This document shows positions 26,731 to 50,743 of a stretch of 64,000 bases of DNA, one piece after another. The position numbers and the translations under genes are program-made. Location: positions 186,001 to 250,000 of the IMG/VR virus record IMGVR_UViG_3300030419_008158; one strand, given 5' to 3'. Under the pieces are notes generated by a model. That model was not told where the DNA came from. It made no database searches and worked only from the letters and a program-made list of their open reading frames with translations. The number at the start of each line of letters is the position of its first letter. Position 1 is the stretch's first letter.

Positions 26731-27771
26731 CTAAATAGTTTCGGGCGACTCTGACCAAGAAATTGTCCAAATGTGTGGGCATGACTTTTTGAGAAAGTTT
26801 TCTATGAAGTCTTTGAATTCATTTTCGCTCTTAAAATCAATGATTTTGTCATCAACTATCAGCTTGTACACACCGACTTCACGGATGACATCCATCTTGT
26901 TAAAGATAAGCCTAGTCACACCATTTACATTTGCTGCCCTCACCAAGCTATCTAAATCCATCCAGTTACATTGACGAGGTCTTCCAGTAGTTGCACCGAA
27001 CTCCATCCCTACCTTTTGAATCTGGAGCAGCGCTGGGTGTTCACCACCAAACTTTTTTGACCCAACATATGTTTCATAAGGTTTGGCGACTCCGATAATC
27101 TGGTGAATACTTTGAGGAGGTATACCTACATTGACAGCAGCAGATACTGTACAAGTGCTCGAACTGACGTATGGGTAATCTCCCCAGTCGATGTCTAAAC
27201 CAAAGCCCTGGGCGCCTTCCATCAGAACAGCTTTTCGACGCCCACGCTGGCTCCATATCGCATCGTAGGGATCAATTAGAAACTTTGAAATTCTCTTTTC
27301 ATCGATTGCGCGCTTTCCAATTCTTGCGTGCTTGTCCCTGTAAGCAGGACCATTACCTGTCCTGGTGGTGCCGATTCTCTCTTCTTGAAGCTCTTCTTCT
27401 ACGTGTGCACTCTGCACAATATGAGCATTGCTGGCAATCTTAACAAGCCTTCTTGCTTCAATGCCTGATTCTTCGAGTTCATCTATTTCTGATAAAAATT
27501 TATCAACATCAACAACACACCCACCTCCGATGAGTGATGGTATTTCATGAAAGACACCTGCAGGGACCAAGTGTGTTACAAACTTTTTACCATTGTGAAA
27601 AATTGTATGGCCTGCATTTGACCCGCCGTTATACCTTGCTACAAGATCATAATTTCCTGTCTTTGCAAGTGTGTGTACAACTTTTCCCTTTCCACAGTCT
27701 CCGTACTGTAAATCAACAACAACATCAGCAATCGGCGGCATTATCTTCTCCAGTTTTTTATTGATTGCCAT
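26731..27771 (-). CDS. purA: adenylosuccinate synthetase (short form)
   Basis: QYGDCGKGK, GGSNAGHT, EGAQG.LDIDWGDYPYVSSS, EFGATTGRPR, NKMD. Confidence 0.93.
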   Translation of the reverse strand: MAINKKLEKIMPPIADVVVDLQYGDCGKGKVVHTLAKTGNYDLVARYNGGSNAGHTIFHNGKKFVTHLVPAGVFHEIPSLIGGGCVVDVDKFLSEIDELEESGIEARRLVKIASNAHIVQSAHVEEELQEERIGTTRTGNGPAYRDKHARIGKRAIDEKRISKFLIDPYDAIWSQRGRRKAVLMEGAQGFGLDIDWGDYPYVSSSTCTVSAAVNVGIPPQSIHQIIGVAKPYETYVGSKKFGGEHPALLQIQKVGMEFGATTGRPRQCNWMDLDSLVRAANVNGVTRLIFNKMDVIREVGVYKLIVDDKIIDFKSENEFKDFIENFLKKSCPHIWTISWSESPETI

Positions 27772-32386: not shown

Positions 32387-32653
32387 CTAAACATAATATG
32401 GATTAACTCCGGCACTGTGTTGGGTTGCGTCTTGAATCTCTTTAATTTCTGAGAACTCTTCTTTTAACATACTGTCGACTGCGTACATCATAGTTTGCTT
32501 TGCGCCGGCGCATCCTTGGCATCCTCCGCCTAATATCACATAAAGAATGCCTGTCTCAGCGTCAAACTCTCGGGCAGTCAAAGATCCTCCATGCATTGCT
32601 AAGCCTGGATTTACATTTTCATTTATGAATTCTTGTATCGTCTCTTTATTCAT
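32387..32653 (-). CDS. NifU C-terminal (NfuA-type) Fe-S carrier domain protein
   Basis: VNPGLAMHGG, LGGGCQGC. Confidence 0.88.
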   Translation of the reverse strand: MNKETIQEFINENVNPGLAMHGGSLTAREFDAETGILYVILGGGCQGCAGAKQTMMYAVDSMLKEEFSEIKEIQDATQHSAGVNPYYV

Positions 32654-32654
32654 A

Positions 32655-32990
32655 CTAAAACCCTACTGACTCTCCGCAACCACATGATCTTGTTGCCTTA
32701 GGAGAGTTGAAGGTAAACCCAGAAGACATTATCGTCTCTTCGTAGTCAACCTCTGTACCCATTAAGAATAGATATGATTTTTTGTCACACAAGACACGAA
32801 GACCAGGTTTTTCAATTATGTGATATAGACTTTCGTCTTCAGGGGGTTCAATGAAATCTATTTGATACTTGAAGCCGGAACAACCTCCTCCTTGAAGGCC
32901 TATGTGCAACGGCCAATCGTTAGGTTTATCCATTCGTGATCTTATTTCTTTCGCCTTCTGGATTGCTTTATCTGTTATCGTCAATTTCAT
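32655..32990 (-). CDS. iscA: A-type Fe-S carrier (IscA/HesB family)
   Basis: GGGCSGFKY, SCGCGES. Confidence 0.9.
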   Translation of the reverse strand: MKLTITDKAIQKAKEIRSRMDKPNDWPLHIGLQGGGCSGFKYQIDFIEPPEDESLYHIIEKPGLRVLCDKKSYLFLMGTEVDYEETIMSSGFTFNSPKATRSCGCGESVGF

Positions 32991-35023
32991 TTAGGGCTCC
33001 ATAGTTTGTTACGGTCAGTGTCGTAGATCGGAACACCAAGGTCTAGTGAAGCCAACATAATCTTCTTCACTACACCTGCCGAGAAATAATCAATGTCTTT
33101 AGCTGTGTTGCCACTAGGCGGGCTCTGACCGCCAGAAATTAGTTTTTCTGCTGTTTTGAGAATAGCGTCTGTAACATCATCCTTTGCAACGATAACCCCT
33201 CTAGGTCTCCAGTTATCCACCAGGGCCTCATTATTCGACCACTCTGCACCTACCGGGTTCCACGTTGACTGGTCTAAAACGTATGGGATACCATCTCTTG
33301 CCATCTTCTCCATATATTCGTTTCCGCGCTGGAGCTGGCCGTATCGGCTGTAATCTTTTGACACAGAGGGTCGTTTGTTTCTGCCAGAAGACCGATCTCT
33401 CTGTGCAATAGCCTCCTCGTCACCTTCTGGCCCTACACCATAATCCCCGTAAAACCCTGAATACATTTTGTCTTGATCGTTTGTTGCCAGCGTTATTCGA
33501 CCTTTGATCCACAGCCCGTATGGGAGACCGGCTGCTGGCTCAAAGCTATCACCAGGGAGAGTCATTGTGGTAGAAAGCTCGTCCTTGCCTCTTCCTTTCA
33601 TGTTCTCAATGCCATAGAAATCATCAGTCCAGTGGACAGTGTCTAGGGTGCTAAGAAATTGGTGGTCTGCATTCTTGTTGAATGCGCGCTTGATATCTCT
33701 GCCAGCCTCTTTGCCGATTTGCCCACCGAAGAACTGATCGCCGAACTTATCCGATGCGGCAAGGTCATGCACGAAGCCCATGGGGTCTTCCTTGAGAAGC
33801 TGTCTCACGTATTTTCTTAAAACGTTTTCTTTCATAGCATCCTTCTTTAGCCTAATCTCTACGTCGCTCCTCCCGAAGATCCCGTCTCCGCCAAGCGCGC
33901 TTGTTATTTTGTAACCTAGAGACTCAATGCTGGCGACATCTTCTGGAAATTGTTGGGCGAACTCTTCGACTCCCATGACCGTCTTTTCAGGCATGAGACC
34001 GGTGCCGAATATTAGTTCCTCAACGCCCTCTTCCCTGTAGCTTTCGTCGAAGTTCCTAAACTCTCCACCCATAGCCTTGATGAGATCGATGAGAGGCCCA
34101 TGATCAGCATACATTTCCTTTTCGGCTTGTTTTCTTGCGCGGTCGAGGCCTCGGTGTTCGACCTCGAAGATATTGAACATTGCCACCTTTCCCTTGAGTG
34201 GGTCAAGCACTGTGTCAAACATGTCTTTGAACTTCTTTTCGTATTGCTGTGCCCTTTGGTCGTGCTTAGACCCGGGATTTAATTCGATGATATCACCGTT
34301 TTTCATGTTAAGTTGTTCTGGAACGCCGAGAACCAAGCTTCCATCGTTCTTTAGGTAGTCAGCAAAGATGTCGCCAAATAGATCAAAGTCACCACTGGGT
34401 AGTTCGATACCCGGAAACAGCTCACTCAGCAAGACGTCTGGGTTTGAGACACCAAGTCTGCGACCAGTTTTCTTCATTGAATCTCTAACATGTTCGGCTT
34501 CCATGGTTCCACCACCATGAGACAGCCAGACCAGTTCCATCATATACTCTTTTATAAGAGTTGTGAATGGGTCTTTAGCGCTGAATGATTTCGCATCACT
34601 ATTCTCAAGCATGTGGTGTAGATCATGCGCCAGATAGTGAGGGTTAACGTCAGCTATGAATGTATCTCCACCGGCAGGAACTTCAAAAGACTTAGGGTAG
34701 ACGTAAAGAAGATTGATTCCGTCTGGATCCATCTCCTTCTGTATTTTCGGGTATAGCTTTCCGATGTTTGAAATGTCAGTAAGGGCAACTTGTCCTCTAC
34801 TCTTGAACCCTGATACTTTACCCTGTATTTCATTTGGCAGTCTATGCGCCCAGCTGAGGTCGTCTGTGTGTGCGACATAGATGTTGACGCTCTGTGGGAT
34901 TGCTTTGAAGTAGTCAGCAACCTCTTCGCGGACCATTACATCGTCGTCATCCTGCTTGAGATATTCAAAGTCGTCTAGAGGGACTTCCATGAGAAGGTCT
35001 CTTATGTATTCGTGTAGTAACAT
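32987..35023 (-). CDS. leader-family B multidomain protein; C-terminal domain paralogous to 40915..41730
   Basis: MLLHEYIRDLLME leader; internal MKENVLRKYVRQLLKE; HDLHH. Confidence 0.8.
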   Translation of the reverse strand: MLLHEYIRDLLMEVPLDDFEYLKQDDDDVMVREEVADYFKAIPQSVNIYVAHTDDLSWAHRLPNEIQGKVSGFKSRGQVALTDISNIGKLYPKIQKEMDPDGINLLYVYPKSFEVPAGGDTFIADVNPHYLAHDLHHMLENSDAKSFSAKDPFTTLIKEYMMELVWLSHGGGTMEAEHVRDSMKKTGRRLGVSNPDVLLSELFPGIELPSGDFDLFGDIFADYLKNDGSLVLGVPEQLNMKNGDIIELNPGSKHDQRAQQYEKKFKDMFDTVLDPLKGKVAMFNIFEVEHRGLDRARKQAEKEMYADHGPLIDLIKAMGGEFRNFDESYREEGVEELIFGTGLMPEKTVMGVEEFAQQFPEDVASIESLGYKITSALGGDGIFGRSDVEIRLKKDAMKENVLRKYVRQLLKEDPMGFVHDLAASDKFGDQFFGGQIGKEAGRDIKRAFNKNADHQFLSTLDTVHWTDDFYGIENMKGRGKDELSTTMTLPGDSFEPAAGLPYGLWIKGRITLATNDQDKMYSGFYGDYGVGPEGDEEAIAQRDRSSGRNKRPSVSKDYSRYGQLQRGNEYMEKMARDGIPYVLDQSTWNPVGAEWSNNEALVDNWRPRGVIVAKDDVTDAILKTAEKLISGGQSPPSGNTAKDIDYFSAGVVKKIMLASLDLGVPIYDTDRNKLWSPK

Positions 35024-35024
35024 C

Positions 35025-36182
35025 TTATAATCCTATAAAGATAACGTCGCCTGACGAGTTGTACTCTCTTGCCAAGGACGCCCAGACTCGCTTAGCTTCT
35101 GGTGAAGTTCCTGACCCTATTGTGCAGTGATGTGCTCCAATAAACACACCACCCGATGATCTAGAGTATTCTACTGCCTTGTCAATAAAGGCTTTGTAGA
35201 TTTGCTTACCGTATCCCTTGCCTCTGTTTTCAGGGTTGTTGATCCAGGCATTGTCAACATCATAGAATTTTGGTCGGAATACCGCTTGTCCTATCTCTAC
35301 TTCTTCGTACTGACCAGTTTCTTCGTTTTTAACAATGTCGGTTCTTGGTTTTGCGTTCGCTACATACTTCTTTTCTGCATCGAGATATTCAGGTGTCTTC
35401 ATTAGAGCGTCAACATCTGATTGGCACTCTTTGAATCCAAGGTTTGACCCTCCTTGAGCATATCCGATGTTAGGTAGATCAACACGAAAGTAGTAGCTGT
35501 CACCTCTGTGCTTGAACGTAGCAGCCTCTGTCAAGGTTGCTGTGTATCTACTGTCACCTTCATATATGAACTGATCTACGTGATTAAAGCTTAAACCTTG
35601 AGCTGCGCCAAGAATTTCAACTTCAGCCATGCATTCGTTTCTGGCACCACCTGCAAGATCTGAACCACTCCAGCTGGGTAATTCATCTTCTAAATCAGGA
35701 ATCCAAAACCCGTAATCCTCAAGATCGTCAATCAAAAGCTCACTTACACCAATTGATTCAATGTCTTCTTCTTCTAGATCTCGAATGTCTCTAATGTCGT
35801 TGTCGATCATGTGCTTGACAATCTTTACGATTGACGCGCGGTCAAAACAAACACTCGAGTCCATAACGTCTCTGAAAAATCCGTATCCTTTGTCGAAGAA
35901 GGTCGACTTGGAAAGCAAATCATCGAACAGCTCTTCATCGTAGTCCAGCTTTTCGAAGTAGAAGTTCTTCAGTGCAGATTCTGAAACCATGCCGAGAGTA
36001 TCTTCACCGTTGAACAAGAATAGTACCCTGGAATAATCTTCTGCTGCAGTTCTTAACATATCACCGATATCGAACGATGTGCCGCTTTCGTATTCTGGCT
36101 GGATGTCAACTACGACAAGACTACCCTTTGATCCTTGCTCTTGCTCGAGTAAAACCCTTATATATTCACGCAGCAGCTTCAT
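35025..36182 (-). CDS. leader-family B protein: isochorismatase-like N-domain plus GNAT-like C-domain
   Basis: MKLLREYIRVLLE; LVVVDIQ...GGARNEC; ENRGKGYGKQIY...SPEAKRVW. Confidence 0.65.
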   Translation of the reverse strand: MKLLREYIRVLLEQEQGSKGSLVVVDIQPEYESGTSFDIGDMLRTAAEDYSRVLFLFNGEDTLGMVSESALKNFYFEKLDYDEELFDDLLSKSTFFDKGYGFFRDVMDSSVCFDRASIVKIVKHMIDNDIRDIRDLEEEDIESIGVSELLIDDLEDYGFWIPDLEDELPSWSGSDLAGGARNECMAEVEILGAAQGLSFNHVDQFIYEGDSRYTATLTEAATFKHRGDSYYFRVDLPNIGYAQGGSNLGFKECQSDVDALMKTPEYLDAEKKYVANAKPRTDIVKNEETGQYEEVEIGQAVFRPKFYDVDNAWINNPENRGKGYGKQIYKAFIDKAVEYSRSSGGVFIGAHHCTIGSGTSPEAKRVWASLAREYNSSGDVIFIGL

Positions 36183-36775
36183 GATATCACCAGCTTTCCT
36201 GCAGCCTCAAGCGCACTCATTGTTGTGGGTGGCTTTGTGTATCTCTTGCTAAGGGGTGATCCCTGAAAGTCAACGACCTTTGGCATACCTGCGCTGCTTC
36301 GTCCGACTGTGGATGCATGTTGCTCGCAGTTATCTTCTTCTTCCGGTGTAATGGTGTTTTGCAAGTCATCAAGCTGGACGCTTTGTACGTCACTACGGTT
36401 TGACAGATAATAATCCCAGACTTCTCTTGCGGACGGTGAGACGTGATCACGATCGGAGACTAAGCCCCCACCGTTTTGAGTCGCCCATTCCATCATTACA
36501 TCATATAGCATAGGGCCCCAGCCCTGGGAGGCATGTGATATTACAACTTCCCAGGCACCGCCGCACGGATGAGCAGGCTTCCTGACAGCTATTTTTCCAC
36601 CGATTGGAGCTGTCGAATGAATATAGGTTCCGTAGTCAGGGTTTTTCACAACATAGCGAACTACAGCATGATCACCCTTGTTTAGGACCTCTACAAACAC
36701 GTCTTCTGGTAAATCAGCAGGCCCTTTAGCAGCCTCGGTCAGCAGTTCTCTTATGTACTCGCGGAGTAGGTTCAT
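36179..36775 (-). CDS. leader-family B protein, GNAT-like
   Basis: MNLLREYIRELLTE; QGWGPMLYD...SD..VSPSAREVW. Confidence 0.62.
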   Translation of the reverse strand: MNLLREYIRELLTEAAKGPADLPEDVFVEVLNKGDHAVVRYVVKNPDYGTYIHSTAPIGGKIAVRKPAHPCGGAWEVVISHASQGWGPMLYDVMMEWATQNGGGLVSDRDHVSPSAREVWDYYLSNRSDVQSVQLDDLQNTITPEEEDNCEQHASTVGRSSAGMPKVVDFQGSPLSKRYTKPPTTMSALEAAGKLVIS

Positions 36776-37557
36776 CGCCCTGTTATCTCCTTCGCCTGCT
36801 CAAGCGTTTTAATGTTCCAGCCTTCGGGATTTAGATCATACTTTGGGTGCAGACCTTGCATCACTAAGTCCAGCCAATACTCCCACAGCTCACCAGATTT
36901 TTCCTGAAGCTGGTTGCGTGATATACGGATTGGTATCATCTCATCCAGCAAAGTGGCAGCTTTAGCTCTGTGGTGACCGTCTGAAAACATGAGAGATCCA
37001 TCAGCATAAACTCGGACATCCAGGGGTTCCCTTATCCCACCAGCAAAATGTTTTTCAGCCCAGGCGAGTTGCTCTTCCTTGGGCAGCTTGCGAAAGTTTT
37101 GCCAATACCACTCGGTCCGGTACTCACCTGTATCTGTGTCTAAAATCTTGGCGGGTACCATCAACTGTTGGCCGGCTGTTTCAAGAAGCACAGACTCTTG
37201 CATCGTCCATGGGCCAGCCTGACCGCTTTTCAAACAGTTGACCATTGTCTCTTCGGCTGTGTATTCGTTATGAATTTCTGGTTGGAATATGTCGTAATAC
37301 GTTTCTCTGTCAATCCCACCTGGTTTTGTGTCGTGGGTCTGCCAGTCAAATATCATATCACCTTTTTCAACCCAGGCATGAAGATAACTCTCGCCGCTAA
37401 ACTTATCAGTCACCCTACCATGAACAACCTTGAACCTGGTTAGGTCTGAGAATTCTTCTTGAGAAGAACCCTGAGCCATCTTGACAGCATGCGGATAGCA
37501 CTGGCCTATCGCAGTCTCAATCAGCAGACCTCTTATGTACTCGCGGAGCAGGTTCAT
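36772..37557 (-). CDS. leader-family B protein: transglutaminase-like Cys-His-Asp domain plus ParB/Srx-like domain
   Basis: MNLLREYIRGLLIE; GQCY...HAWVE...FD; PLDV...SDGHHRAKAA. Confidence 0.62.
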   Translation of the reverse strand: MNLLREYIRGLLIETAIGQCYPHAVKMAQGSSQEEFSDLTRFKVVHGRVTDKFSGESYLHAWVEKGDMIFDWQTHDTKPGGIDRETYYDIFQPEIHNEYTAEETMVNCLKSGQAGPWTMQESVLLETAGQQLMVPAKILDTDTGEYRTEWYWQNFRKLPKEEQLAWAEKHFAGGIREPLDVRVYADGSLMFSDGHHRAKAATLLDEMIPIRISRNQLQEKSGELWEYWLDLVMQGLHPKYDLNPEGWNIKTLEQAKEITGR

Positions 37558-38774
37558 TAGTCTTCGCCCTTTGATACTGTCGTGTCATTATATTTCTTTT
37601 TCATCCAATTTGACAACGCTTTTGTCACGTCTATCTGAGACAGTCTTGTGTCGTCCGGAAACGATTTTAGGTTGTTGAGATAATCTTTAAAAAATAAATT
37701 CTCAACAGCATCATCGAGAACTCTAGACACATCATCATCAACGTCTAATGCTGCAAGAGCTCCTGTCTCAGCCTCGTCCGGAAGCTTGTACGCATTTTTC
37801 GCAGCCATGGCAAGATTTTTTGCTGTTGCGAAACCTGGAATCATACCCTGGATTTCATCAACGACGATATCGGTTACTGTAGCAGCCAGTCCCTTGGCAC
37901 CCTCCTTACCCTGCTTCTTAAGCTGAGCGTATTTGATCACCGCTCTTAGGTCGCCAACTGTCTTAACATCGTTAATTGACGTCATCTTTTTCTTTTGTTT
38001 TTTCTCTACAAGAATTTTCTGTAACAGCGCTTCCCTTATGTAACTTCTTATGATTGATTCATTCATGTACTTCTTGAGAAGGTCAATAAGCTCCTTGTCT
38101 TTACCCCTTGGTTGTTTACCAAGGTAGGGGACGACTAGTCCTTTTCTATCCCGCGGACCCTTGACCACCTCTGCAGGGCCCTCCTGTGCGTACTCATCTT
38201 CAAATTTTGTTAGGGCTTTCTTGATCTCTTCTTGGGACATCATCTTGATCGCAGCTTCGGGATGATTGGTCGATCTAAGTCCTGAAATGCTAGATGCGCC
38301 GTCCTCATGTTTGTGCGCGCCACGAATACCTTTTTTTTGTTTCGCGCTGTAATAAGAAGAGTCAACCGAGTCCCACAGCTCGTCTTTATCCATGGTCTTG
38401 CCCAAGAATTCTATCTCATCCCCAGCCTCTTCCCACACCTCTTGTGATATGAGAACTTCTGACCCTGTATCAAACCGGTTCACTCCTCCCGATTTTTCGA
38501 TGACCCAGTGCGGAACTTTGTAGGCATACACGTTACCGCTAACACCATGATTCCAGGCGATATCTGTTGGGTTGGGTGTTAGAAACACACCGGATTTAAC
38601 GGGACCCTCTATCCAGTCTCTGGACCAGCCTTCCTCTCCTTTTGCACCCCAGCGCTCGGCCGGTTTTGGTGAAGCGGGGCGTTTGCCGATATGATAAAGT
38701 GTACGCTTGTCCTTCTGGCCTCGAATCGATTTTTCAGATAGAATATCTCTTATATGTTTTCGAATCAAATCCAC
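37557..38774 (-). CDS. leader-family B multidomain protein, possible ART-like N-domain
   Basis: (GTG)DLIRKHIRDILSE; TLYHIG...GVFLT...SEVLI; internal MNESIIRSYIREAL. Confidence 0.6.
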   Translation of the reverse strand: MDLIRKHIRDILSEKSIRGQKDKRTLYHIGKRPASPKPAERWGAKGEEGWSRDWIEGPVKSGVFLTPNPTDIAWNHGVSGNVYAYKVPHWVIEKSGGVNRFDTGSEVLISQEVWEEAGDEIEFLGKTMDKDELWDSVDSSYYSAKQKKGIRGAHKHEDGASSISGLRSTNHPEAAIKMMSQEEIKKALTKFEDEYAQEGPAEVVKGPRDRKGLVVPYLGKQPRGKDKELIDLLKKYMNESIIRSYIREALLQKILVEKKQKKKMTSINDVKTVGDLRAVIKYAQLKKQGKEGAKGLAATVTDIVVDEIQGMIPGFATAKNLAMAAKNAYKLPDEAETGALAALDVDDDVSRVLDDAVENLFFKDYLNNLKSFPDDTRLSQIDVTKALSNWMKKKYNDTTVSKGED

Positions 38775-38784
38775 TTTAAAGTTC

Positions 38785-40041
38785 CTAAAAGCATATTTCA
38801 CTACTCATAACATCTTCTAAATAACCAAATGTATTTTCTGGTTTACCGTTCAAATCAAAAGTCATTCCGGAGGTCGCATCAGCAAGAGGCTCCCATCCGC
38901 CGGTTATGTCTTTGCTCATGTTGTCTATGAAAGCGTACAGCTTTATATCATCAATTGATTCGAGCATCATCAATAGCTTTTCCTGTGTTATCGTACTGTT
39001 AGTATTGTATGACTTACCGACTTTTGATGCAGGAATTAGAAAACTTTGTCCAGGCTCATCAGTAAAAACTATGACAATTTTTTTGCTATTCGCTCGCCAG
39101 TCCACATAAAACTCATCAAGAGGCGGATCGGACTCATCTATTACATTGCCCACCCATACAGGCCATAAAAGCTCTTCCCACTGGTATGGCAAAAAAGCAG
39201 ATATATTTCTTAGAGATAAATAAAGTGCGTCATATAACATCTCATACTGCCCTATCATGTCATATGTTGTTACGTCACCTAGCACATCCTGAAATTCCCC
39301 TATTGCTTGCAGGTTACTAGCCAAGTACAGAAAATTATGTTTTCCTGGCGTGTCGCCGGCGTTTTTAGGGCCCACAATAAGTGCCCACTTTACATGACTT
39401 GATTCTTTATACTTTTCAGAGAAAGCACTTGCAAGTGCATAGACAGATTCAATTTCTGGTAACATAGATGCAGACAAATCAAGTATGATCAGTACGTCGA
39501 CGTCTTCTTTTTCACACTCATCGTAAACGCTAATACTTGAGTCTTCTTCAGGGTCAGAAAGTGCGTCTTCAGGTTGCTCTGCTGCGATGTCTTTGACGTC
39601 TTTTTCTTCTCTTTCACCTTGTGTAAAGCTTCCCTTGCAGAGACCCTCTTCTAAGTACCCTTTAACGCAGTATGTTGTATAAAAACCTTCGTTTCCGTCT
39701 TCTGTGACGCAAGGCTTTTCGCCCAAATTATAGTGGTGAGGATCACACTCTAGAAACTCTTTGCACTCACTCATACTCAACACTATCGGCGGGTCCACAC
39801 AGACATCTTTTGTAATCTCAATTCTCATTAGAGGTCCACTAACACCAGGGCAAAAATAATATTCTGTTCTTATACATAGTTTCTCGTATTCTTCTTGAGA
39901 ATCAACTATTATAATTTCGCTGGTGTCGTTGTCATAATTCACATGTGTATGGTAGACAGGGTTTTCCATAAACCATTCCGAACAACTTACGTTGGTAAAA
40001 GACAGCAATATCATCGCAAGAAGTATTAGTGTGTGTTTCAT
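38785..40041 (-). CDS. putative lipoprotein with Cys-rich N-domain and VWA domain
   Basis: Signal/lipobox NVSC; ILDLSAS MIDAS; VFTDE. Confidence 0.72.
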   Translation of the reverse strand: MKHTLILLAMILLSFTNVSCSEWFMENPVYHTHVNYDNDTSEIIIVDSQEEYEKLCIRTEYYFCPGVSGPLMRIEITKDVCVDPPIVLSMSECKEFLECDPHHYNLGEKPCVTEDGNEGFYTTYCVKGYLEEGLCKGSFTQGEREEKDVKDIAAEQPEDALSDPEEDSSISVYDECEKEDVDVLIILDLSASMLPEIESVYALASAFSEKYKESSHVKWALIVGPKNAGDTPGKHNFLYLASNLQAIGEFQDVLGDVTTYDMIGQYEMLYDALYLSLRNISAFLPYQWEELLWPVWVGNVIDESDPPLDEFYVDWRANSKKIVIVFTDEPGQSFLIPASKVGKSYNTNSTITQEKLLMMLESIDDIKLYAFIDNMSKDITGGWEPLADATSGMTFDLNGKPENTFGYLEDVMSSEICF

Positions 40042-40571
40042 GCTTTCACCATCATGGGGCTTTCTTCGTCTTTCAAGAGGATGAGATCGAATTGTGATTC
40101 CTGAGATGCGAATTTATCTTTTCTCTTAATGAAGAGGTATATCGCCGTGATTGGCATAGCGGCACCAGGTTCCATTCTTATTTCGTTTTCGTCCCAGAAC
40201 AGCCGCGGTTCTTGGCCCGCAGTAATTGGATCGTAGCCTTGTCCATCGTCGATAGTAGCCTGAAGGATTACATGAATTGTCTTGCCTCTATTCGAAGCAT
40301 CCCACACATCAGCAAATCTAACAGCAGTATGAAAAGTCTCAGACCACGAAACACCGGTGGATTCATTTTGTAGCTGACCGAGGATTAATCTTGCTCGCTC
40401 GTCGCCGCTGATTTTACCCCTACGGATTGCTGACGCTAATGATGCACTGGGCATTGTAAGCTTCATCCCTCTGTATACGTTTTTCTTGCCCTTTGTGAAG
40501 GATGGTTGTCCGTAAGCTGATGCAATCCTTTCGTTCAATAGAGACCTTATGTATTCGCGGAGAAGTTTCAT
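40038..40571 (-). CDS. leader-family B protein, R-S-E-type ADP-ribosyltransferase-like
   Basis: MKLLREYIRSLLNE; VYRGM, GVSWS....AVRFA, ENEI. Confidence 0.62.
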   Translation of the reverse strand: MKLLREYIRSLLNERIASAYGQPSFTKGKKNVYRGMKLTMPSASLASAIRRGKISGDERARLILGQLQNESTGVSWSETFHTAVRFADVWDASNRGKTIHVILQATIDDGQGYDPITAGQEPRLFWDENEIRMEPGAAMPITAIYLFIKRKDKFASQESQFDLILLKDEESPMMVKA

Positions 40572-40918
40572 TATATCTTACTCAAACTATCCGGCCATTT
40601 TTTCCATGTTCGACTGTCACCGTCAGGCTGAACCATGACGAATTTTCCGCCGCGGCGCACAACAGTCCCCACCTTTAGAGAACCGTTCTTGAGCGTCCAT
40701 TGGACCCGGTCGCCTTTTTTGAATCCGGCCTTTAATTCATTTCGCTTTCGCTTGACTGTGTCAGCCACAGCTGTCCATATGACTCGAAGATCAGCTATTG
40801 GCATCTCTTCCATTTGATCCAAGATAACTTGAACGTTTGGGTTCTGGGCAGGTGGTTCTACGGGAGCATCTGCCGTTTCCTGAATCAATTTTCTTAGTTG
40901 TCTCTTAGTAATTTTCAT
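40571..40918 (-). CDS. leader-family A protein with C-terminal SH3/KOW-like module
   Basis: Start trimmed to MKITKRQLRKLIQE; FKKGDRVQW...GTVV. Confidence 0.75.
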   Translation of the reverse strand: MKITKRQLRKLIQETADAPVEPPAQNPNVQVILDQMEEMPIADLRVIWTAVADTVKRKRNELKAGFKKGDRVQWTLKNGSLKVGTVVRRGGKFVMVQPDGDSRTWKKWPDSLSKI

Positions 40919-41730
40919 ACCCAACCCCTCGATGTGAACTCTTTGTGAGTCATGACTTGAATGTCCAGGCCGGCTTCTTCCGCCAGATCCTCCCATTCTT
41001 CTGCTTCTGTTGTATCGGGAACTTTCGGTTCGGTTCGTTCGGAACCCGGGTGCCACTCCGGAGGCAATCTGGTAAGTGGACCATCAGGTACGATCAACGC
41101 CATAGGTGTCCAGTTATCAACCAGCGCCTCATTGTTCTGTGTGCTTCGAAATCCGCCAAAGCTTGGATCCCAGTCTTCTTCATCCAGGACTAGAATCTTG
41201 TACTCTTCATAAGCTTCTGGGTCGTATGTCGATTGAACGCCCTTGTTGATACCAGACTGCTTCTTCATATCCGGGAATACTTCTTCGTATGCCAGTGTTC
41301 CCCCTGTGTAAAGCTGGTCCATATCATTTGCCAAAAGCGTGATATGGCCTTTGATAAGAATGCCATAGTCTCCGAATTTACCTGCACCCTTGATCTCACC
41401 TGGTAGATAAGCTGAAGCTGATAATTCATCCTTGGAGCTAAATGATCCGTCAAGAAAAGCTTTCATCGTCTGAGGGCTTCGAAACCAGTGAACAGTTACC
41501 AAGCTGTCAAGAAACCCGCGATCAGCACTTTTGGCAAACGCCTTCTTGAGATCTCGCCCCTGTGAACGTGCTTGCTTAACTAGTTCAACATGTTCTTCAT
41601 CGGTAGCGTATACACTGGGGGTTGGATTGTTCTCTTTAGTACCTGCTGCGGCGAGATCTTTAGCTAACTGTTTGCGTTTAGCTGCGTCTTCAATCAGCAG
41701 ACCTCTTATGTATTCTCGGAGGATGTTCAT
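40915..41730 (-). CDS. leader-family B protein, paralog of 32987 C-domain
   Basis: MNILREYIRGLLIE; TVHW, KDELS, IKGHITL, NNEALVDNW. Confidence 0.78.
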   Translation of the reverse strand: MNILREYIRGLLIEDAAKRKQLAKDLAAAGTKENNPTPSVYATDEEHVELVKQARSQGRDLKKAFAKSADRGFLDSLVTVHWFRSPQTMKAFLDGSFSSKDELSASAYLPGEIKGAGKFGDYGILIKGHITLLANDMDQLYTGGTLAYEEVFPDMKKQSGINKGVQSTYDPEAYEEYKILVLDEEDWDPSFGGFRSTQNNEALVDNWTPMALIVPDGPLTRLPPEWHPGSERTEPKVPDTTEAEEWEDLAEEAGLDIQVMTHKEFTSRGWV

Positions 41731-41731
41731 T

Positions 41732-43045
41732 TTATGTCTTATCTCCGACTATAGTATCTATCAGCGCTTTTCTTCTGTCCTTATCAGCCCACGCTTTTTG
41801 CGCGTACGGGTCTAGCGAGTGAAGAGGGTCGAAATACAAAAACTTTTTTCCTGGCTTTACGCTGGGTGCTGTGTATACGCTTATCCCAAAATTCCTGTCG
41901 TATCTCTCAAAAGAATGTACGCAACGCTTTCCACCGCCGCCGGGAGCATCGACAACAAACGTGGGTGTGTTAAATCCAGCAGTAACTCCTCGCACACTCT
42001 TCTCAACATCTATCGCAGTCTGAACTGACGTTCTCATATCCTCAGTACCAGCTGTTAGGTCATGAATGTAGACATAGTAAGGCTGGATGTTAATGTAGCT
42101 TAGCTTTTTCACCAATGATATCATGCTGTCGGCAGAGTCGTTCACGTGATTCTGAAATACAGACTGATTTCTGACTTTTACTCCCCTCGAAAATAAAACG
42201 TTCATGGCGTCTTGTGTGATACCCGTAATTTCATTTGAGTGATTGAAATGCGTATGAATACATACCTCTTTGTACTGTTTTCTTGCCTTGCTAGTTATCC
42301 TACACACAGCATCTGTCCACGCTGCGTCTGTCAAGATCTTCATCGGCATAATCGCAAGACCCTTCGTAGCAAATCGGAACCGCCTAATGTGATCAATCTT
42401 TAGAAGCTCTTCACCTAAGTCTTTTACCTGAGAGGCTTTTAAGCGATAAGAATCTCCTCCGGATATCACTACATCCTGAATTTGCTTGTTTTCGCGGAGG
42501 TACTTGAACATATCATTCCACCGATCTCGAGAGGCTTTAATAGATACTTTCTCCGCTGTGTCTGTGTCTCCCCCGACGGCGTATGCCCGAGTGCAGTATC
42601 GACAGTATACAGGGCACGTGTCTAGCGCAAGAAATAGCACCTTATCTTCGTATCGATGAGTCAGACCTTTTACAGGAGAGTCTGCCTGTTCACCCAAGCT
42701 ATCGAAACGTAACATAGGATGATCAGGTTGAAGATGTGAAGCAAGCGTCAGGAATTGTCTTCTGATGGGACAATTGTCAGGATTGTTCCAATTCATCAAC
42801 GAAAGAAGATAAGGCGTAATACGTGTCGTCATCGGTGCTCTTCTAAAACCTTCTTTAGCGTCTTCTAGAAACTTTTTATCCACAAGATCCTGAATTGTAT
42901 TTAGAAGCTTCCTGTGATTTGTAATTGCATTCTTTTCTTGCCACTTATGATCAACAAAAGTGTCATAGTCGATATCCCGCCATGCAGGAATAGCTCTCCA
43001 AAACTCATCGCCTCTGAATTCTGTGCTGTCTGAAAAGACGTTCAT
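41732..43045 (-). CDS. kamA: KamA-family radical SAM / PLP aminomutase (lysine 2,3-aminomutase-like)
   Basis: GLTHRY, CPVYCRYCTR, ISGGD, NQSV, QPYY, DAPGGGGK. Confidence 0.88.
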   Translation of the reverse strand: MNVFSDSTEFRGDEFWRAIPAWRDIDYDTFVDHKWQEKNAITNHRKLLNTIQDLVDKKFLEDAKEGFRRAPMTTRITPYLLSLMNWNNPDNCPIRRQFLTLASHLQPDHPMLRFDSLGEQADSPVKGLTHRYEDKVLFLALDTCPVYCRYCTRAYAVGGDTDTAEKVSIKASRDRWNDMFKYLRENKQIQDVVISGGDSYRLKASQVKDLGEELLKIDHIRRFRFATKGLAIMPMKILTDAAWTDAVCRITSKARKQYKEVCIHTHFNHSNEITGITQDAMNVLFSRGVKVRNQSVFQNHVNDSADSMISLVKKLSYINIQPYYVYIHDLTAGTEDMRTSVQTAIDVEKSVRGVTAGFNTPTFVVDAPGGGGKRCVHSFERYDRNFGISVYTAPSVKPGKKFLYFDPLHSLDPYAQKAWADKDRRKALIDTIVGDKT

Positions 43046-43770
43046 GCAAAACCTCCAGCGTTAGGATATCTTATCTTTGCATATTTTCTATACTCACTTC
43101 TTATTTTAAGCATAAAGGGATGTAGACTCTCTTCAGAATAACCGTTCGCTTTTCCCGTTTCAAAAATTCTGTACAGCTCATAATCTATCACATCACTCAA
43201 AGGCACCTTGTTGGATTTTGCTCTCTTCATAAACCCAGCAATGTGTGCCTTTACTTCGGCGGGACAAAGATAGTATTCAGCAGCATTTGAAAGTGACTTC
43301 CAAATCACATCAGCTGTGGGTGTCTTTTCTTGACAATCCATAAGTTCCCACGTCTCTTGCCCTGAGTGCTCTAGTTCATGTCTAATAACATCAACTAGCT
43401 CGTCATTAATGTTACTAAGAACTTGATCCGGATAATCTCGAGGCAAAACAAGATTCACACGTAAATCTGACGTCGATCTTTGGGACTGTGATGCTCCTAA
43501 ATCATACTCATAAGCAGCATCTGCGTTGACAGATTGTCCCTCTGTTACATGGATAATCACATCCCTAAGATAATCTATTTCTGTAATTTCCGGTACATTC
43601 TGCAGCCTAAAATAGGCTTCTCCAGTTTGTCTAAAATGCTCTCGAACATCTTCATCTTTTAGAGCACTTAGAACATGGCGCTTTATTATTGTCGTATATC
43701 TATCAAGCTTGCGACCGGTAATCACAGCCTCAAACAGCAAAGAGCTTATATAGTCACGGAGAAGCTTCAT
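43042..43770 (-). CDS. leader-family B protein with zincin-like HExxH motif
   Basis: MKLLRDYISSLLFE; RHELEH; YY..PAEVKA. Confidence 0.65.
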   Translation of the reverse strand: MKLLRDYISSLLFEAVITGRKLDRYTTIIKRHVLSALKDEDVREHFRQTGEAYFRLQNVPEITEIDYLRDVIIHVTEGQSVNADAAYEYDLGASQSQRSTSDLRVNLVLPRDYPDQVLSNINDELVDVIRHELEHSGQETWELMDCQEKTPTADVIWKSLSNAAEYYLCPAEVKAHIAGFMKRAKSNKVPLSDVIDYELYRIFETGKANGYSEESLHPFMLKIRSEYRKYAKIRYPNAGGFA

Positions 43771-44105
43771 GCACTGCCCCACTTTTTTGCAAGTCCTTCT
43801 GATATCAGGAATGCTCTTATATCAACATCGTCCATAACATATACAGTCGCCAACCAACGTCCGTACTTGCCCTTTCCGTGTGTCTCAATTGTTACTTCTT
43901 TACCTAGGCAGAGCTCTCTAACTCTGTCACGGGCTTTTATCGCCAAAGCTTTTTCTTCGAGGTCTTTCGTTCGAATCTCAGGTGTATCAATTCCTATGAG
44001 CCTAAGTTTTATTTTTTTGGCCCACATCTTAAAGCCCAAGTCAACTTCAGCTGTAAGCGTATCACCATCATAAACCTTTGTTATGATTGCTCTATATACA
44101 TACAT
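43767..44105 (-). CDS. thermonuclease (SNase-like) family protein
   Basis: VYDGDT, RLIGIDTPE, GKYGRWLA. Confidence 0.9.
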   Translation of the reverse strand: MYVYRAIITKVYDGDTLTAEVDLGFKMWAKKIKLRLIGIDTPEIRTKDLEEKALAIKARDRVRELCLGKEVTIETHGKGKYGRWLATVYVMDDVDIRAFLISEGLAKKWGSA

Positions 44106-44141: not shown

Positions 44142-44148
44142 TAAATAT
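44142..44148 (-). promoter_or_regulatory. ATAYTTA motif (putative late promoter)
   Basis: ATATTTA at head of the leader-family B operon. Confidence 0.55.
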
Positions 44149-44160: not shown

Positions 44161-44196
44161 AAAAAAAAGGGCAGGTTGAAAGTTTTCAACCTGCCC
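44161..44196 (-). terminator. intrinsic terminator
   Basis: GGGCAGGTTGAAA/TTTCAACCTGCCC stem followed by T8. Confidence 0.8.
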
Positions 44197-44525: not shown

Positions 44526-45614
44526 TTATTTTTTTAATCCACCTAAAACTGTAACTGCAATTAGGCCTGGCAGATTCTTTTGAACGTAGACACCTGAAAA
44601 CAGTGTGTCTGCACGGCCACCCACGTAAGAGAAGGCTGACTCAAGTCTATTGCTTACACCGGGATCTTCTGCCATTTCGCTGGTTACGACGAGTAAAAGA
44701 ACACCTGACTTGGCATTTCCTGACGGTCCTGGACACGGAGAAGATCGCAAACACCCTTGATATACTGTTGAACCCAAGTCTGCTCTAGTAACGTCTCTCA
44801 CAACAGTACTTCCAAGCAAGATTCTCCCGTCTTGGTGAAGACATTTTTCCAAATCTTTTGAGTCAAAACTCTGGATTGGGGAGCTGTCATTTGCCATTTT
44901 TAGTACAACACCTAAAAGCTTGGCAAAATTCTTGTTGGCAGCCGGATACATGTTGAGCATCCCAACTTTTCCTCGAAGAAGTTGCAACTGCTTCTCATTG
45001 TCAATTACAACATGTGGGTGATCAGAAACATCAGACAAAAGAAGCTTGTAGTTGTTACTAATTGTTGGGTTGAGCATTTCTTGAGCTGTCGGTTTGCTTA
45101 TTACATAAATGACCTTTCCGACTGCTTCTATGGAGCTTAGATAACGAGTTGCAGAATTATGAAGAACGTGACACGCTGAGCCGGTTCCACCACCGCCGCC
45201 TGCCAAGACGAAAATCCAGTCAACCTTTCCAATTCTCGTTCTAAGCGCGTCTTCGTAAAGGGCGCTATTTTCACCAAGCACCTTCTTGCCGACAACAACG
45301 TCTTTTCCGACACCATCGGCGCCTGGTATTAAAAGAAAATGTGCAGGATCAACGCCGTCCGGCTGGTCTTTTACCGTGGTGTTGACAAGAAGTGTTTTGC
45401 TGAACCCTACATCTAAAAATGCTTTTGCCAGTTTTCCTCCACCCCCACCAACTCCAATAAATGCGCAGTTAATTGCACTGGGCGCTGTATTGTCAGGTAA
45501 AAGTCTTTCATCACCTTGGGCAGGTGCATCATCATATGCTTCAACAAAACCAAAGTCAAAGTCTGTATTGTTGATGTAGTTTTCGTTAATTTCGTTCTCG
45601 TTTTCTGTACTCAT
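44526..45614 (-). CDS. tubulin/FtsZ-superfamily GTPase
   Basis: IGVGGGGGK, VNT, GADGVGKD, GGGGGTGS signature, IDNE, D..DL. Confidence 0.88.
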   Translation of the reverse strand: MSTENENEINENYINNTDFDFGFVEAYDDAPAQGDERLLPDNTAPSAINCAFIGVGGGGGKLAKAFLDVGFSKTLLVNTTVKDQPDGVDPAHFLLIPGADGVGKDVVVGKKVLGENSALYEDALRTRIGKVDWIFVLAGGGGGTGSACHVLHNSATRYLSSIEAVGKVIYVISKPTAQEMLNPTISNNYKLLLSDVSDHPHVVIDNEKQLQLLRGKVGMLNMYPAANKNFAKLLGVVLKMANDSSPIQSFDSKDLEKCLHQDGRILLGSTVVRDVTRADLGSTVYQGCLRSSPCPGPSGNAKSGVLLLVVTSEMAEDPGVSNRLESAFSYVGGRADTLFSGVYVQKNLPGLIAVTVLGGLKK

Positions 45615-45894: not shown

Positions 45895-46258
45895 TGGTGG
45901 AGGTGCCGGGAGTCGAACCCGGGTCCAGCATGTCTCCTTCAGCAGGTCATTCACAAGTTTGTCTGATTTATTTCCAAACCAGCAAGGTATCTCGAAAACA
46001 CCGCGTCCCTATCGAGAATCAGGATCTCACCTGCTTGCGCCGGGAACCATTGTGGATCTTTTTTTACTCCGTGAGATCAACCACTTATCCGATCTTTGTT
46101 AACAAGGTTACCGGAAACCCCGCGACTAAGCAGCTAGTGCGTAATCGTACTCAACATTATCGTTGGCAATTAAAGTTCGTAACACTGTCACGCCATGTGT
46201 TACAGTTGGCTACTTGCACCTGAAAAATTCAACACCCTGTCGAAACCATTTCACCCCC
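45895..46258 (-). ncRNA. ssrA: tmRNA, tag (A)ANDNVEYDYALAA
   Basis: 5' GGGGGTG..GGTTTCGAC; 3' T-arm and CACCTCC-ACCA with G3.U pair; tag ORF 46126..46167. Confidence 0.93.
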
Positions 46259-46761: not shown

Positions 46762-46849
46762 TGGCGGAAGGAGAGGGATTCGAACCCCCGGTAGCTCTCA
46801 CTACGGCGGTTTTCAAGACCGCTGCCTTCAACCACTCGGCCATCCTTCC
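46762..46849 (-). tRNA. tRNA-Ser(TGA)
   Basis: Cloverleaf with long variable arm, CCA encoded. Confidence 0.93.
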
Positions 46850-46850
46850 T

Positions 46851-47222
46851 CTATTCTTCTTTTCCACCCTTTATAAGGGTGAATTTAGATCTCTTTTCAT
46901 TGACTTTTCTTTCATTGTATTTTGATTTTTGTGTCTCTAGAGATAGACAAAATTCTTTCATCCAGTCCTCTCTTTCAAATGCGTAATGAACAAATTCCAT
47001 CGCAATCATTGATGATATTGTATCATCCATGTGTTCATTTTTCAATGGGGGAATCATAGAAGATAAAGTGCCATCTTTTTCAAAGAAAAGTATAGCTACA
47101 GGCAAATTTTCATGATCGCTGGGATCAATTTCTAAAATTGCACTATGAAGAGCCTTATATAACGGACGGTCTGCTTCTCCATTACTTCCTGTGATGTTAG
47201 ATTTCATTTTTCTTTTCTTCAA
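46851..47222 (-). CDS. hypothetical protein
   Basis: ORF between pckA and tRNA; ends FTLIKGG. Confidence 0.6.
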
Positions 47223-48651
47223 AAAGTGTCATTAAGCGGGTACATGCATCTTCATACTGATCAAAAGTCTTCCATCGACGCTCAGGACACAAATACTGAT
47301 CTACCTCGGAGTCAAAGCTGTTCGGTATGGAAAGCCCTGTCAACAAGTGTGTTATAAACCATTTTTTTGTAAGGCGTCCGGACACTATCTCTCTGATTAT
47401 CTTTCGAGAGACGCTTATTGGCATTCTTGTACCCACTCCGTACCCACCTCCTGACCACCCTGTATTGACAAGCCAACAGTCTACGTTGTGATCAAGTATT
47501 TTCTTCTCTAAAAGGTTTGCATATGCATCTACATGCATAGGCATAAAAGGTGCACCAAAGCAGTGCGAAAATGTTGCCTGGGGTTCAACAATTCCGGATT
47601 CAGTTCCTGCAACTTTAGCTGTGTATCCCATCTTAAAGTGCTGAACTGCTTGTTCTCTTGTTAACCTAGAAACCGGAGGAAGCACACCAAATGCATCACA
47701 CGTTAGGAATATCACATTTTCAGGATGAGCACAGACACCTGTTTTAGATGCACCAGTAATTAGAGAAATATCGTATGAAGACCTTGTGTTTTCTGTAATT
47801 TGAGAATCTGAAAAATCTGGAACGCCATCTTTGACAATAACATTTTCTAAAATCGATCCTTCTTGCTGGCACGCATTCCAAATTTGTGGCTCAGCTTCTT
47901 TAGAAAGATTAATCACCTTAGCATAACAACCGCCCTCAAAATTAAAAAGACCATCAGGAGACCAGCCATGCTCGTCGTCGCCGATTAGAAGTCTCTCCTC
48001 ATCAGACGAAAGTGTCGTTTTTCCTGTGCCAGACAAGCCAAAAAATACTGCGGGTCGACTTCCATCTTTTGCTGTGTTGACAGAGCAGTGCATTGGAAGA
48101 ACATTTTTTTGCGGCAACAAATAGTTCAAGACAGTAAACACAGACTTCTTAATTTCACCTGCGTAGTATGTTCCTGTGATGAGTATTTCTTGGCTATCCA
48201 AGTTGATAAGAACCCTAGGATCTTCCTGTGCACCGGGAGCACAGTAAAGAGTCCAGTCACAAGATTCATCTTTGTTTTCTTTGCATACAAACATGTTATT
48301 CGCAAAAAGTGCCTGCCATGAAAGCTCTGTGGTCACCTCTAGTGAAAGAGCATAGTTCGAATCCCACCCAGCTTGCAAAAATTGTGTGGTGACATTTTTA
48401 TCGCTCAAATAACGAAGAATTCTTTCCTTAGTGTCAAGAAAATAAGCCTGTGTCACTCTTTGATTGTTTTCCCAATCAATTAGGGACGCCTTCTCATCGA
48501 GTGGATCGCATACAAAGAACTTAGCAGTTGGGCATCTGCCTGTATACTTTCCCGTAGTTACTACAAGCGCTCCAGTTTTTAATTGAGATGCGCCTTCGTG
48601 GGAAAGTGCCCTCTCAAGAAAAGATTTTTTAGCTCGGATCGAACTTTTCAT
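47197..48651 (-). CDS. pckA: phosphoenolpyruvate carboxykinase (ATP)
   Basis: YAGEIKK, MHCS, GLSGTGKTTLS, LIGDDEHGW, NFEGGCYAK. Confidence 0.95.
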   Translation of the reverse strand: MKSSIRAKKSFLERALSHEGASQLKTGALVVTTGKYTGRCPTAKFFVCDPLDEKASLIDWENNQRVTQAYFLDTKERILRYLSDKNVTTQFLQAGWDSNYALSLEVTTELSWQALFANNMFVCKENKDESCDWTLYCAPGAQEDPRVLINLDSQEILITGTYYAGEIKKSVFTVLNYLLPQKNVLPMHCSVNTAKDGSRPAVFFGLSGTGKTTLSSDEERLLIGDDEHGWSPDGLFNFEGGCYAKVINLSKEAEPQIWNACQQEGSILENVIVKDGVPDFSDSQITENTRSSYDISLITGASKTGVCAHPENVIFLTCDAFGVLPPVSRLTREQAVQHFKMGYTAKVAGTESGIVEPQATFSHCFGAPFMPMHVDAYANLLEKKILDHNVDCWLVNTGWSGGGYGVGTRMPISVSRKIIREIVSGRLTKKWFITHLLTGLSIPNSFDSEVDQYLCPERRWKTFDQYEDACTRLMTLFEEKKNEI

Positions 48652-48737
48652 AAAGAATCATGTCTCCTCTTACATTTCCTACATTGTAATACTCAAAAAT
48701 TTTTCGTAATAAAGGAAATCTTAAGAGGCACACACTT

Positions 48738-49577: not shown

Positions 49578-49684
49578 TATTACCTCCGTGTCTAATCTGC
49601 ACGGAACAGAGCATCCAAAGCATCCCGGGCAAAATCCCCGCTTTTCTCTCTGTTCACTTACAACAGAAATATCATGCACAAAAA

Positions 49685-49691
49685 TAAGTAT
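49685..49691 (-). promoter_or_regulatory. ATAYTTA motif (putative late promoter)
   Basis: ATACTTA upstream of endolysin. Confidence 0.5.
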
Positions 49692-49699
49692 CTTATGCC

Positions 49700-50431: not shown

Positions 50432-50434
50432 ATG

Positions 50435-50641: not shown

Positions 50642-50736
50642 TTTTTCCTCCTTGTGTGTGTGTGTTGTAATGGGTTTCACAAAGCACTTTGCTTTGTAAT
50701 TTTACTATAGTAAATCATGCATCGATGTTCACTAAG

Positions 50737-50743
50737 ATATTTA
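50737..50743 (+). promoter_or_regulatory. ATAYTTA motif (putative late promoter)
   Basis: ATATTTA upstream of + strand gene. Confidence 0.55.

Follow-up and report, generated by a model that had tools for sequence, protein, structure and literature searches.

A 14-residue N-terminal leader shared by unrelated proteins of an uncultured marine phage: a candidate capsid-targeting propeptide

The internal proteins of phage T4 have just one element in common, a capsid-targeting sequence (CTS), which is removed by the protease gp21 (PMC3012670). The prohead proteases of T4 (gp21), phiKZ, and SPN3US cleave after Glu, in x-x-E motifs (PMC3012670, PMC5694885), and in giant myoviruses of the phiKZ type the ejection and inner-body proteins are processed at (S/A/G)-x-E, while their paralogues may share identical N-termini (PMC5694885). 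The polyvalent proteins are enzymes thought to be delivered together with DNA by phages and plasmids (Iyer et al. 2017, PMC5512222). Here we analyse a 64,000-nucleotide stretch of DNA (hereafter the window; positions 186,001–250,000 of IMG/VR record IMGVR_UViG_3300030419_008158), which lies within a contig of 284,429 bp of marine metagenomic origin. On its minus strand, a tightly packed run of genes (32987–43782) contains eight open reading frames (ORFs) that open with a 14-residue leader. In our preferred reading, to which we assign a probability of about one half, the leader would be a T4-CTS-like capsid-targeting propeptide that is cut after Glu14 and loads a large, shuffled set of proteins for delivery. 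The individual steps of scaffold binding, packaging, cleavage, and ejection are those that we infer from sequence.

The leader was searched in the cluster with the consensus M-(K/N)-(L/I)-L-R-E-Y-I-R-x-L-L-x-E. The preliminary description of this DNA had listed eight leader-bearing ORFs, and all of these starts indeed carry the leader on the minus strand. The copies starting at 36182, 36775, 37557, 40571, and 41730 are canonical leaders of type A, those at 43770 (MKLLRDYISSLLFE) and 35023 (MLLHEYIRDLLME, without residue 2) are variants, and the one at 38774 (VDLIRKHIRDILSE) is a weaker copy with a GTG start. One more copy had been reported at 64000; its position is the true N-terminus of a 276-amino-acid (aa) ORF (63170–64000, minus strand), but the sequence itself (MLHEFIKEAIKEE) is a weak, merely leader-like variant. 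A second type of leader, type B (MKITKRQLRxIIxE), is found in the cluster at 40918, as well as at 134, 344, 966, 1371, 1784, and 3217, and the totals for the window are 8 type-A and at least 7 type-B leaders. Two further copies in the cluster, absent like type B from the preliminary description, are internal, at about residue 400 of a 678-aa ORF (first codon at 33823) and about residue 240 of a 405-aa ORF (first codon at 38054). A degenerate DNA pattern of the leader has 4 exact matches in the window versus 0.00 expected (100 shuffles). DNA 5' of the leader start codons is not conserved, and the Leu and Glu codons vary between copies; thus, selection acts on the leader peptide. A purely DNA-level repeat was rejected, as the upstream DNA and many codons vary.

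Leaders of all three types detected (A, B, and C) follow the common frame M-(K/N)-h-h-x-x-x-h-R-x-h-h-x-E (h, hydrophobic). Type A reads MNLLREYIRxLLxE, type B MKITKRQLRRIIKE, and type C MKLILENWRKYLxE. Among 119 unique leaders, Leu occupies position 11 in 83 and position 12 in 93, and Glu occupies position 14 in 88, which is not an ascertainment effect, because these positions lay outside every search pattern. Glu14 is present in 46 of 49 type-B leaders and is invariant in 38 aligned members of the family of the 271-aa cargo, which bear type-A or type-C leaders. Directly past Glu14 the information content falls to background. The suggestion that the leader ends in L-x-E is thus supported at the sequence level by the sharp stop of conservation at Leu-Leu-x-Glu14. 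In the AlphaFold model of the 177-aa cargo (177-aa ORF; predicted local distance difference test score, pLDDT, of 83), the leader forms a separate low-confidence helix, which is followed by disordered residues 14–23 and then by a globular domain.

We consider the internal copies to be the most informative result of the analysis. The set comprises 41 nonredundant internal leaders, some of which are mutually homologous and hence not fully independent. Instead of Met1, 27 of them have Glu, versus a background of 7% (binomial p ~1e-21, with partly homologous cases), and a hydrophobic residue stands two positions ahead of this Glu in 26 of 41. The residue that follows the bracketing Glu is usually small (Ser, Asn, Ala, or Gly), and Glu14 is retained in 32 of 41, so that an internal leader is flanked by h-x-E at both ends. 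In two fusion proteins of the window, the internal leader is degenerate over its first half but still ends in L-x-E (385-aa protein, '..TLTE'; 261-aa protein, '..VLLE'). Such brackets and retained ends are as expected if a Glu-cutting protease frees the modules and trims the tag. Helix capping was considered as the cause of Glu at the start of internal leaders and rejected, since capping preferences do not account for Glu there. Several proteins also have a second conserved N-terminal prefix of about 35 residues ('M-x-K-x-P-Q-I-F-T...') ahead of an internal leader (L054:1686–2306, L046:7114–7749, P0072, P0075, and P0231), which has the appearance of a two-part propeptide.

Outside the window the degenerate DNA pattern matches 45 stretches of IMG/VR contigs of up to 293 kb, often as 3–6 tandem copies. 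About 25 consecutive genes open with a type-A or type-B leader in a 302-kb relative, and six consecutive genes with a type-C leader in a 169-kb relative. The 284-kb genome itself has at least 35 leader genes in three clusters, according to a scan of ~117 kb. A 30-residue leader profile compared with 1.84 billion representative proteins has 97 matches with E value ≤ 0.001, nearly all of them at residue 1, and some of the matched proteins hold 2–5 copies. With the leader trimmed off, blastp sorts 236 leader ORFs, taken from large viral contigs (~50 stretches), into 79 cargo families. Homologous cargoes can bear different leader types (A and C in one family; A, B, and C in another), and modules that are fused in the window occur as separate leader-bearing genes elsewhere, and vice versa. 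The view of the leader as a portable module therefore holds, as type A stands at residue 1 in 160 of 175 cases and the leader is found on ~79 unrelated cargo families. The further statement that the proteins diverge completely after the leader is correct only in part: blastp shows that the 678-aa ORF carries, in its C-terminal half, a paralogue of the 271-aa ORF, with the leader included. Searches of the open literature did not reveal the leader motif strings. Capsid targeting as a concept is known from T-even phages, but we found no earlier description of this tag, of the extent of its use, of its three subtypes, or of internal copies with such brackets.

Sequence comparison putatively ties the leader family to T4-type heads by way of TerL, of type-B ORFs adjacent to S77 genes, and of a superoxide dismutase extension. 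When T4-like head proteins were compared by tblastn with the fetched leader contigs, the only one found was TerL, in contigs L043 and L020, both of which carry type-A-like leaders (truncated in L043); these TerL sequences are 52–59% identical to that of the T4-like Microcystis phage Mel-JY01. Among 92 T4-like head-module loci, exactly three ORFs open with a type-B leader, versus ~0.05 by chance and none in reversed sequence, and all three are located just downstream of the Peptidase_S77 (gp21-family) gene. The leader ORF is followed by the scaffold and Gp23 genes in L077 and L135, and L101 ends before that point. L077 also encodes an Fe/Mn superoxide dismutase (L077:14331–14969) in which 16 leader-like residues (MKLKTILKEILELDQT) precede position 1 of the Pfam domain; its gene is situated between those for the S77 protease and the capsid, and an MreB-like gene adjoins it. 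An S77 profile scan of viral contigs reported 80 T4-like loci, none of which comes from a known leader contig. In the 284-kb genome a ClpP-family protease (L053:14777–15397; Pfam CLP_protease) has its best PHROG matches among head-maturation proteases (PHROG 94 'head maturation protease', E value 2e-38), and it is 67–80% identical to proteins of six other viral contigs, five of them leader-bearing.

The comparison with T4 gives several similarities. As with the gp21-removed CTS of the internal proteins IPI–III and Alt, a short N-terminal peptide is attached to otherwise unrelated, fast-evolving proteins, it ends in hydrophobic-x-Glu, and related leaders adjoin gp21-family proteases in T4-like head modules. 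The T4 CTS string and the first 10 residues of the leader agree at Met1, Glu6, Phe/Tyr7, Ile8, and Glu10, which is a resemblance of pattern alone, and the leader cargo, like T4 Alt, includes an enzyme with the R-S-E ADP-ribosyltransferase (ART) fold. In contrast, the leader has 14 residues rather than 10, comes in three subtypes, and is present internally in multi-module fusions, while one genome has at least 35 tagged genes in several clusters, compared with a handful of such genes in T4. Heads of large myoviruses such as phiKZ, 201phi2-1, and SPN3US likewise contain tens of internal proteins with propeptides cut after Glu, although for the phage analysed here the parallel is drawn from sequence. 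However, phiKZ-type propeptides are mostly 80–130 residues long and have no shared short motif, and their P3 residue is small (Ser, Ala, or Gly), whereas it is hydrophobic in the leader.

Under the capsid-targeting reading, the leader would act as an amphipathic helix that docks its cargo onto the scaffold or core of the assembling prohead. A head-maturation protease would then cut it off at the hydrophobic-x-Glu site, after Glu14, and would separate multi-module proteins into their modules at internal leaders. Freed of its leader, the cargo would remain inside the head and pass into the host along with the DNA. Among the proteins so delivered may be the ART-fold enzyme, further enzymes with putative roles in modification or RNA repair, a lytic transglycosylase, and numerous small acidic proteins. 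A broader version, in which a widespread uncultured lineage of marine huge myoviruses loads several dozen proteins by means of a 14-residue code with three dialects and cuts polyproteins internally, is offered more tentatively, at somewhat less than even odds.

A number of results weigh against capsid targeting. About 150 of the 284 kb of the genome were examined by walking out from the window and using precomputed Pfam annotation, and this part contains no Peptidase_S77 protease, Gp23 capsid protein, portal, or terminase. The only protease candidates in the genome are the ClpP-family protein, whose neighbours are not head genes, and a Trypsin_2 lipoprotein. Only 3 of the 92 T4-like head modules have leader ORFs. 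The number of tagged genes is far above any known capsid-targeted set, and the CCA-adding enzyme, HAD phosphatase, and RNase T among the cargoes are not known virion proteins. Cultured relatives offer no help either: megablast and tblastn against 50,697 phage records gave no match for the cluster, the tubulin-like gene, the leader, or the 271-aa cargo, whereas the tail sheath matches many. In the model of the 271-aa protein, the leader and the residues after it make up one long helix (residues 2–28), so that the leader may be part of the fold there. Finally, leader codons are kept beyond what the peptide needs, which leaves room for a role at the RNA level.

An alternative that we consider unlikely, and that is the strongest among those weighed, is that the leader is a docking or encapsulation peptide, uncleaved by a head protease, for a non-capsid compartment or a cytoplasmic multi-enzyme assembly. 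The destination could be a microcompartment-like shell, a phage-nucleus-like structure, or an assembly formed via leader–leader or leader–hub coiled coils. Encapsulation peptides of bacterial microcompartments and cargo-loading peptides of encapsulins are short amphipathic helices with a flexible linker that load unrelated enzymes into a shell; they are not cleaved, and these systems are cellular, not viral. The layout of the leader proteins (short N-terminal amphipathic helix, flexible linker, enzyme) is the same as that of the microcompartment peptides. A tubulin/FtsZ-family gene (44526–45614) adjoins the cluster, many cargoes resemble RNA-repair or metabolic enzymes that would act inside the cell, the leader clusters do not lie beside head genes in this genome, and the very large number of tagged genes would fit a cellular compartment more easily than a head. 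However, shell, chimallin-like, and microcompartment genes were not seen in the ~150 kb covered by the precomputed annotation, the conserved Glu at both ends of internal leaders would have no role in such docking, and type-B leader ORFs are present in T4-like head modules beside the S77 protease.

Less probable still is that the leader acts mainly at the level of nucleic acid or translation, e.g., as a binding site for a repressor or small RNA, as a fixed codon context that times or throttles the translation of toxic genes, or as a patch of homology for recombination, and that the peptide is secondary. Codon usage, taken from the leaders of the cluster and of about 50 fetched viral-contig loci, speaks for it. 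Compared with the rest of the same genes, type-A leaders have ATA for Ile8 in 91% versus 33%, AGR for Arg9 in 94% versus 51%, CGY for Arg5 in 81% versus 25%, and TAC for Tyr7 in 78% versus 42%, and in type B, Ile is coded by ATY and almost never by ATA. Position-specific synonymous bias is thus seen in both types; the window also encodes tRNA-Arg(TCT), a CAT-anticodon tRNA, and a transfer-messenger RNA (tmRNA), and frequent shuffling of modules would profit from a shared recombination patch. On the other hand, Leu and Glu codons vary freely, upstream DNA is unconserved, the three leader types have different nucleotide sequences with the same peptide frame, and internal copies far from start codons keep the peptide. 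Variable codon sites of the leader are mostly transition pairs, a pattern read as shared descent of the leader DNA, and near-saturated transitions with few transversions are what shared descent under peptide selection would give. We read this as leader DNA of shared descent that was probably spread onto unrelated genes by recombination.

Very improbable is a remnant of common ancestry, in which the leader would be the N-terminal fold or oligomerisation helix of one old family whose remainder has diverged: signs of shared descent in the leader DNA, the continuous helix of the 271-aa model, and the paralogy of some window cargoes agree with it, but the cargoes differ in fold and Pfam family (ADP-ribosyltransferase, CCA-adding enzyme, SLT, DUF192, HAD, RNase T), conservation stops abruptly at residue 14, one cargo family bears different leader types, and the helix is detached from the domain in the 177-aa model.

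Among the cargoes themselves, good evidence exists solely for the 177-aa protein (40038–40571), which is predicted to have an R-S-E-type ADP-ribosyltransferase fold. In 17 homologues Glu128 and Glu130 are invariant, Arg34 (in YRGM) and Ser75 are conserved in at least 90%, and position 77 is Ser or Thr. The best Foldseek matches of the model are nearly all ADP-ribosyltransferase toxins with probability 0.92–0.99, albeit with an E value of just 4.5e-3 and template modelling scores (TM-scores) of 0.3–0.55, and the ORF has no Pfam or PHROG match. The assignment made in the preliminary description is therefore backed by Arg34/Ser75/Glu128-x-Glu130 and by the fold matches. Structure prediction and Foldseek, which lead to ART toxins for the 177-aa protein, lead to no known fold for the 271-aa protein: its model is confident (pLDDT 86), and no fold in PDB or BFVD matched it with an E value below 0.02. 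The 271-aa family is abundant in marine data, with 161 homologues.

Comparison of ten cluster ORFs with Pfam and PHROGs revealed only the radical SAM enzyme and one faint ParB PHROG match; relaxing Pfam to E value ≤ 1 added nothing meaningful, and the profile of the 198-aa family has no match among PDB sequences. Short motifs are conserved in several cargoes: the 242-aa protein has H-E-x-x-H-S, the 261-aa protein has Cys, His, His, and Asp in its first module and DGHHR in its second, the second module of the 385-aa protein has a GNAT-like RGKGxGK, and the 405-aa protein has LYHI..SGvF..E. Such motifs, with no Pfam match, are all that stands behind the earlier calls of GNAT, transglutaminase-like, zincin, isochorismatase-like, and H-type ART domains, and the ParB call comes down to the faint PHROG match plus DGHHR; these assignments were not upheld.

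As for 108 leader proteins from other loci, most have no match in Pfam. Single matches are to CCA-adding enzyme, DUF192, HAD_SAK_1, RNase T, HD, and GNAT, as well as to SLT and phage tail lysozyme, and weak single matches are to ART-PolyVal (E value 9e-4), DUF3990, Zeta_toxin (2e-5), and SprT-like (8e-4). Overall, the predicted repertoire fits injected effectors. Similar to polyvalent and MuF effectors (PMC5512222), it may include shuffled ADP-ribosyltransferase, ParB-like, Zeta-kinase-like, peptidase, and RNA-end-processing domains, and it shares with polyvalent proteins the two- and three-module fusions and the weak matches to ART-PolyVal and DUF3990. Unlike in polyvalent proteins, however, the modules are mostly separate genes with their own leader and not domains of one giant polypeptide, and in contrast to MuF effectors, no MuF domain or portal-fusion anchor was reported by the Pfam scan of the 108 proteins.

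If the leader is a true packaging signal, a simple sequence rule would list the injected proteins of a whole uncultured phage lineage and mark ~80 uncharacterised cargo families for study. Injected proteins act before phage gene expression and therefore would be prime candidates for counter-defence and host take-over. T4-style capsid targeting would then scale to dozens of cargoes and to polyproteins, and the payload, which includes the 271-aa family without a fold match, would be about ten times as diverse as that of any phage studied. The leader would also serve as a new short tag with which foreign proteins could be loaded into phage heads, and it would give a rule for recognising injected effectors in viromes.

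Genes of the window include those for a tmRNA, eight tRNAs, a tubulin/FtsZ-family protein, phosphoenolpyruvate (PEP) carboxykinase, GH25 lysozyme, and DNA methylase. Outside the window, the genome encodes a 1114-aa tail sheath, the conserved part of which matches 2052 phage records, mostly T4-like. Judging by this gene content and the tail sheath, the genome is therefore that of a huge myovirus of bacteria. Beyond the window, the genome walk also revealed tail-fibre-sized ORFs, PhoH, HSP20, ThyX, peptide deformylase, PrkA/SpoVR, and glycosyltransferases.

The leader transcription unit lies on the minus strand and seems to begin past a strong intrinsic terminator (44169–44196), whose 12-bp stem and T8 tail mark the end of the unit upstream. 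The ATAYTTA motif had been proposed to head the operon, but with 13 copies in the window versus 15.2 expected it is not enriched, and it was rejected as a promoter motif since its frequency is at chance level. A single ATATTTA copy (44142–44148) lies between the terminator and the first gene of the unit, 37 nt 5' of it. This first gene (43767–44105) encodes a staphylococcal-nuclease homologue without a leader (Pfam SNase, E value 3.6e-14). It is followed by the 242-aa cargo with the type-A variant MKLLRDYISSLLFE (43042–43770), which is a possible zincin according to its conserved H-E-x-x-H-S and has no Pfam match, by a lysine-2,3-aminomutase-like radical SAM enzyme without a leader (41732–43045; Pfam LAM_C and Radical_SAM), and by the 271-aa cargo of the widespread marine family with a type-A leader (40915–41730). 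The type-B leader of the cluster reads MKITKRQLRKLIQE and opens a 115-aa protein (40571–40918), the true start of which is 40918 and not the upstream GTG of the mechanical ORF. The 177-aa ART-fold cargo, with its type-A leader, is next, and then comes a predicted lipoprotein without a leader (38785–40041), which has a signal peptide with Cys and a D-x-S-x-S VWA-like motif; by blastp it is a paralogue of a 697-aa lipoprotein beyond the downstream edge of the window, and it has no Pfam match.

The remaining genes of the unit all begin with a type-A leader. In the 405-aa ORF (37557–38774) the weak GTG-initiated copy precedes the LYHI/SGvF/E module, the internal leader, and a C-terminal module. 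The 261-aa ORF (36772–37557) consists of a Cys20/His46/His60/Asp71 module and a ParB-like (DGHHR) module, which are separate leader-bearing genes in other phages and whose junction retains just '..VLLE'. The 198-aa cargo (36179–36775) belongs to the largest family and, judging by its sequence, which includes a GWGP..YD motif, is possibly GNAT-like. In the 385-aa ORF (35025–36182) there are two modules (residues 1–225 and 217–385), the second of which is found alone with its own leader elsewhere, and the junction is a decayed leader ending in L-T-E. The last ORF, of 678 aa (32987–35023), combines a unique N-terminal half of 400 aa with a complete internal leader, preceded by M-K-E-N, and the paralogue of the 271-aa family. 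A separate block of type-B leader genes on the minus strand (1–3217) has starts at 344, 966, 1371, 1784, and 3217, plus one gene off the window edge at 134, and continues downstream of window position 1.

Several minor observations concern the surroundings of these genes. The tubulin/FtsZ-family gene, directly upstream of the leader operon, is divergent (Pfam E value 8e-5, below the curated cut-off). On the other side, IscA-type and NifU-type Fe-S assembly genes (32387–32990) come after the operon, and the radical SAM gene lies inside it. Predicted lipoproteins, all without a leader, are scattered among leader genes (window 38785–40041, L051:14468–16561, L053:13520–14308, and L055:5064–5525), one having the VWA-like D-x-S-x-S motif and one belonging to the Trypsin_2 family. 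Positions 1–11000 of the window have 53–57% G+C versus 40–45% elsewhere in it, and this stretch holds the type-B block, a MoxR-like AAA ATPase, and a DUF2201 metallopeptidase/VWA pair. Positions 12000–26000 contain a long run of very small ORFs (mostly 57–110 aa), nearly all on the minus strand, and the few that were scanned have no family match. An MgtC-family protein with an ACT domain is encoded within the same region (20889–21563).

The tmRNA gene (45895–46258) has the tag ANDNVEYDYALAA, and the eight tRNA genes, including tRNA-Arg(TCT) and the CAT-anticodon tRNA, are located at 46762–62474. PEP carboxykinase (47197–48651) is full-length and ATP-dependent (Pfam E value 8e-170). The phage also has a PrkA/DUF444/SpoVR trio, a gene for a chlamydial Hc1-like histone, and one for a sigma-70 region-4 protein of 61 aa (L053:17515–21065 and L057:15608–15811). 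The adenylosuccinate-synthetase homologue of the window (26731–27771) is short, and its size of 346 aa recalls the PurZ enzymes of phages with 2-aminoadenine genomes.

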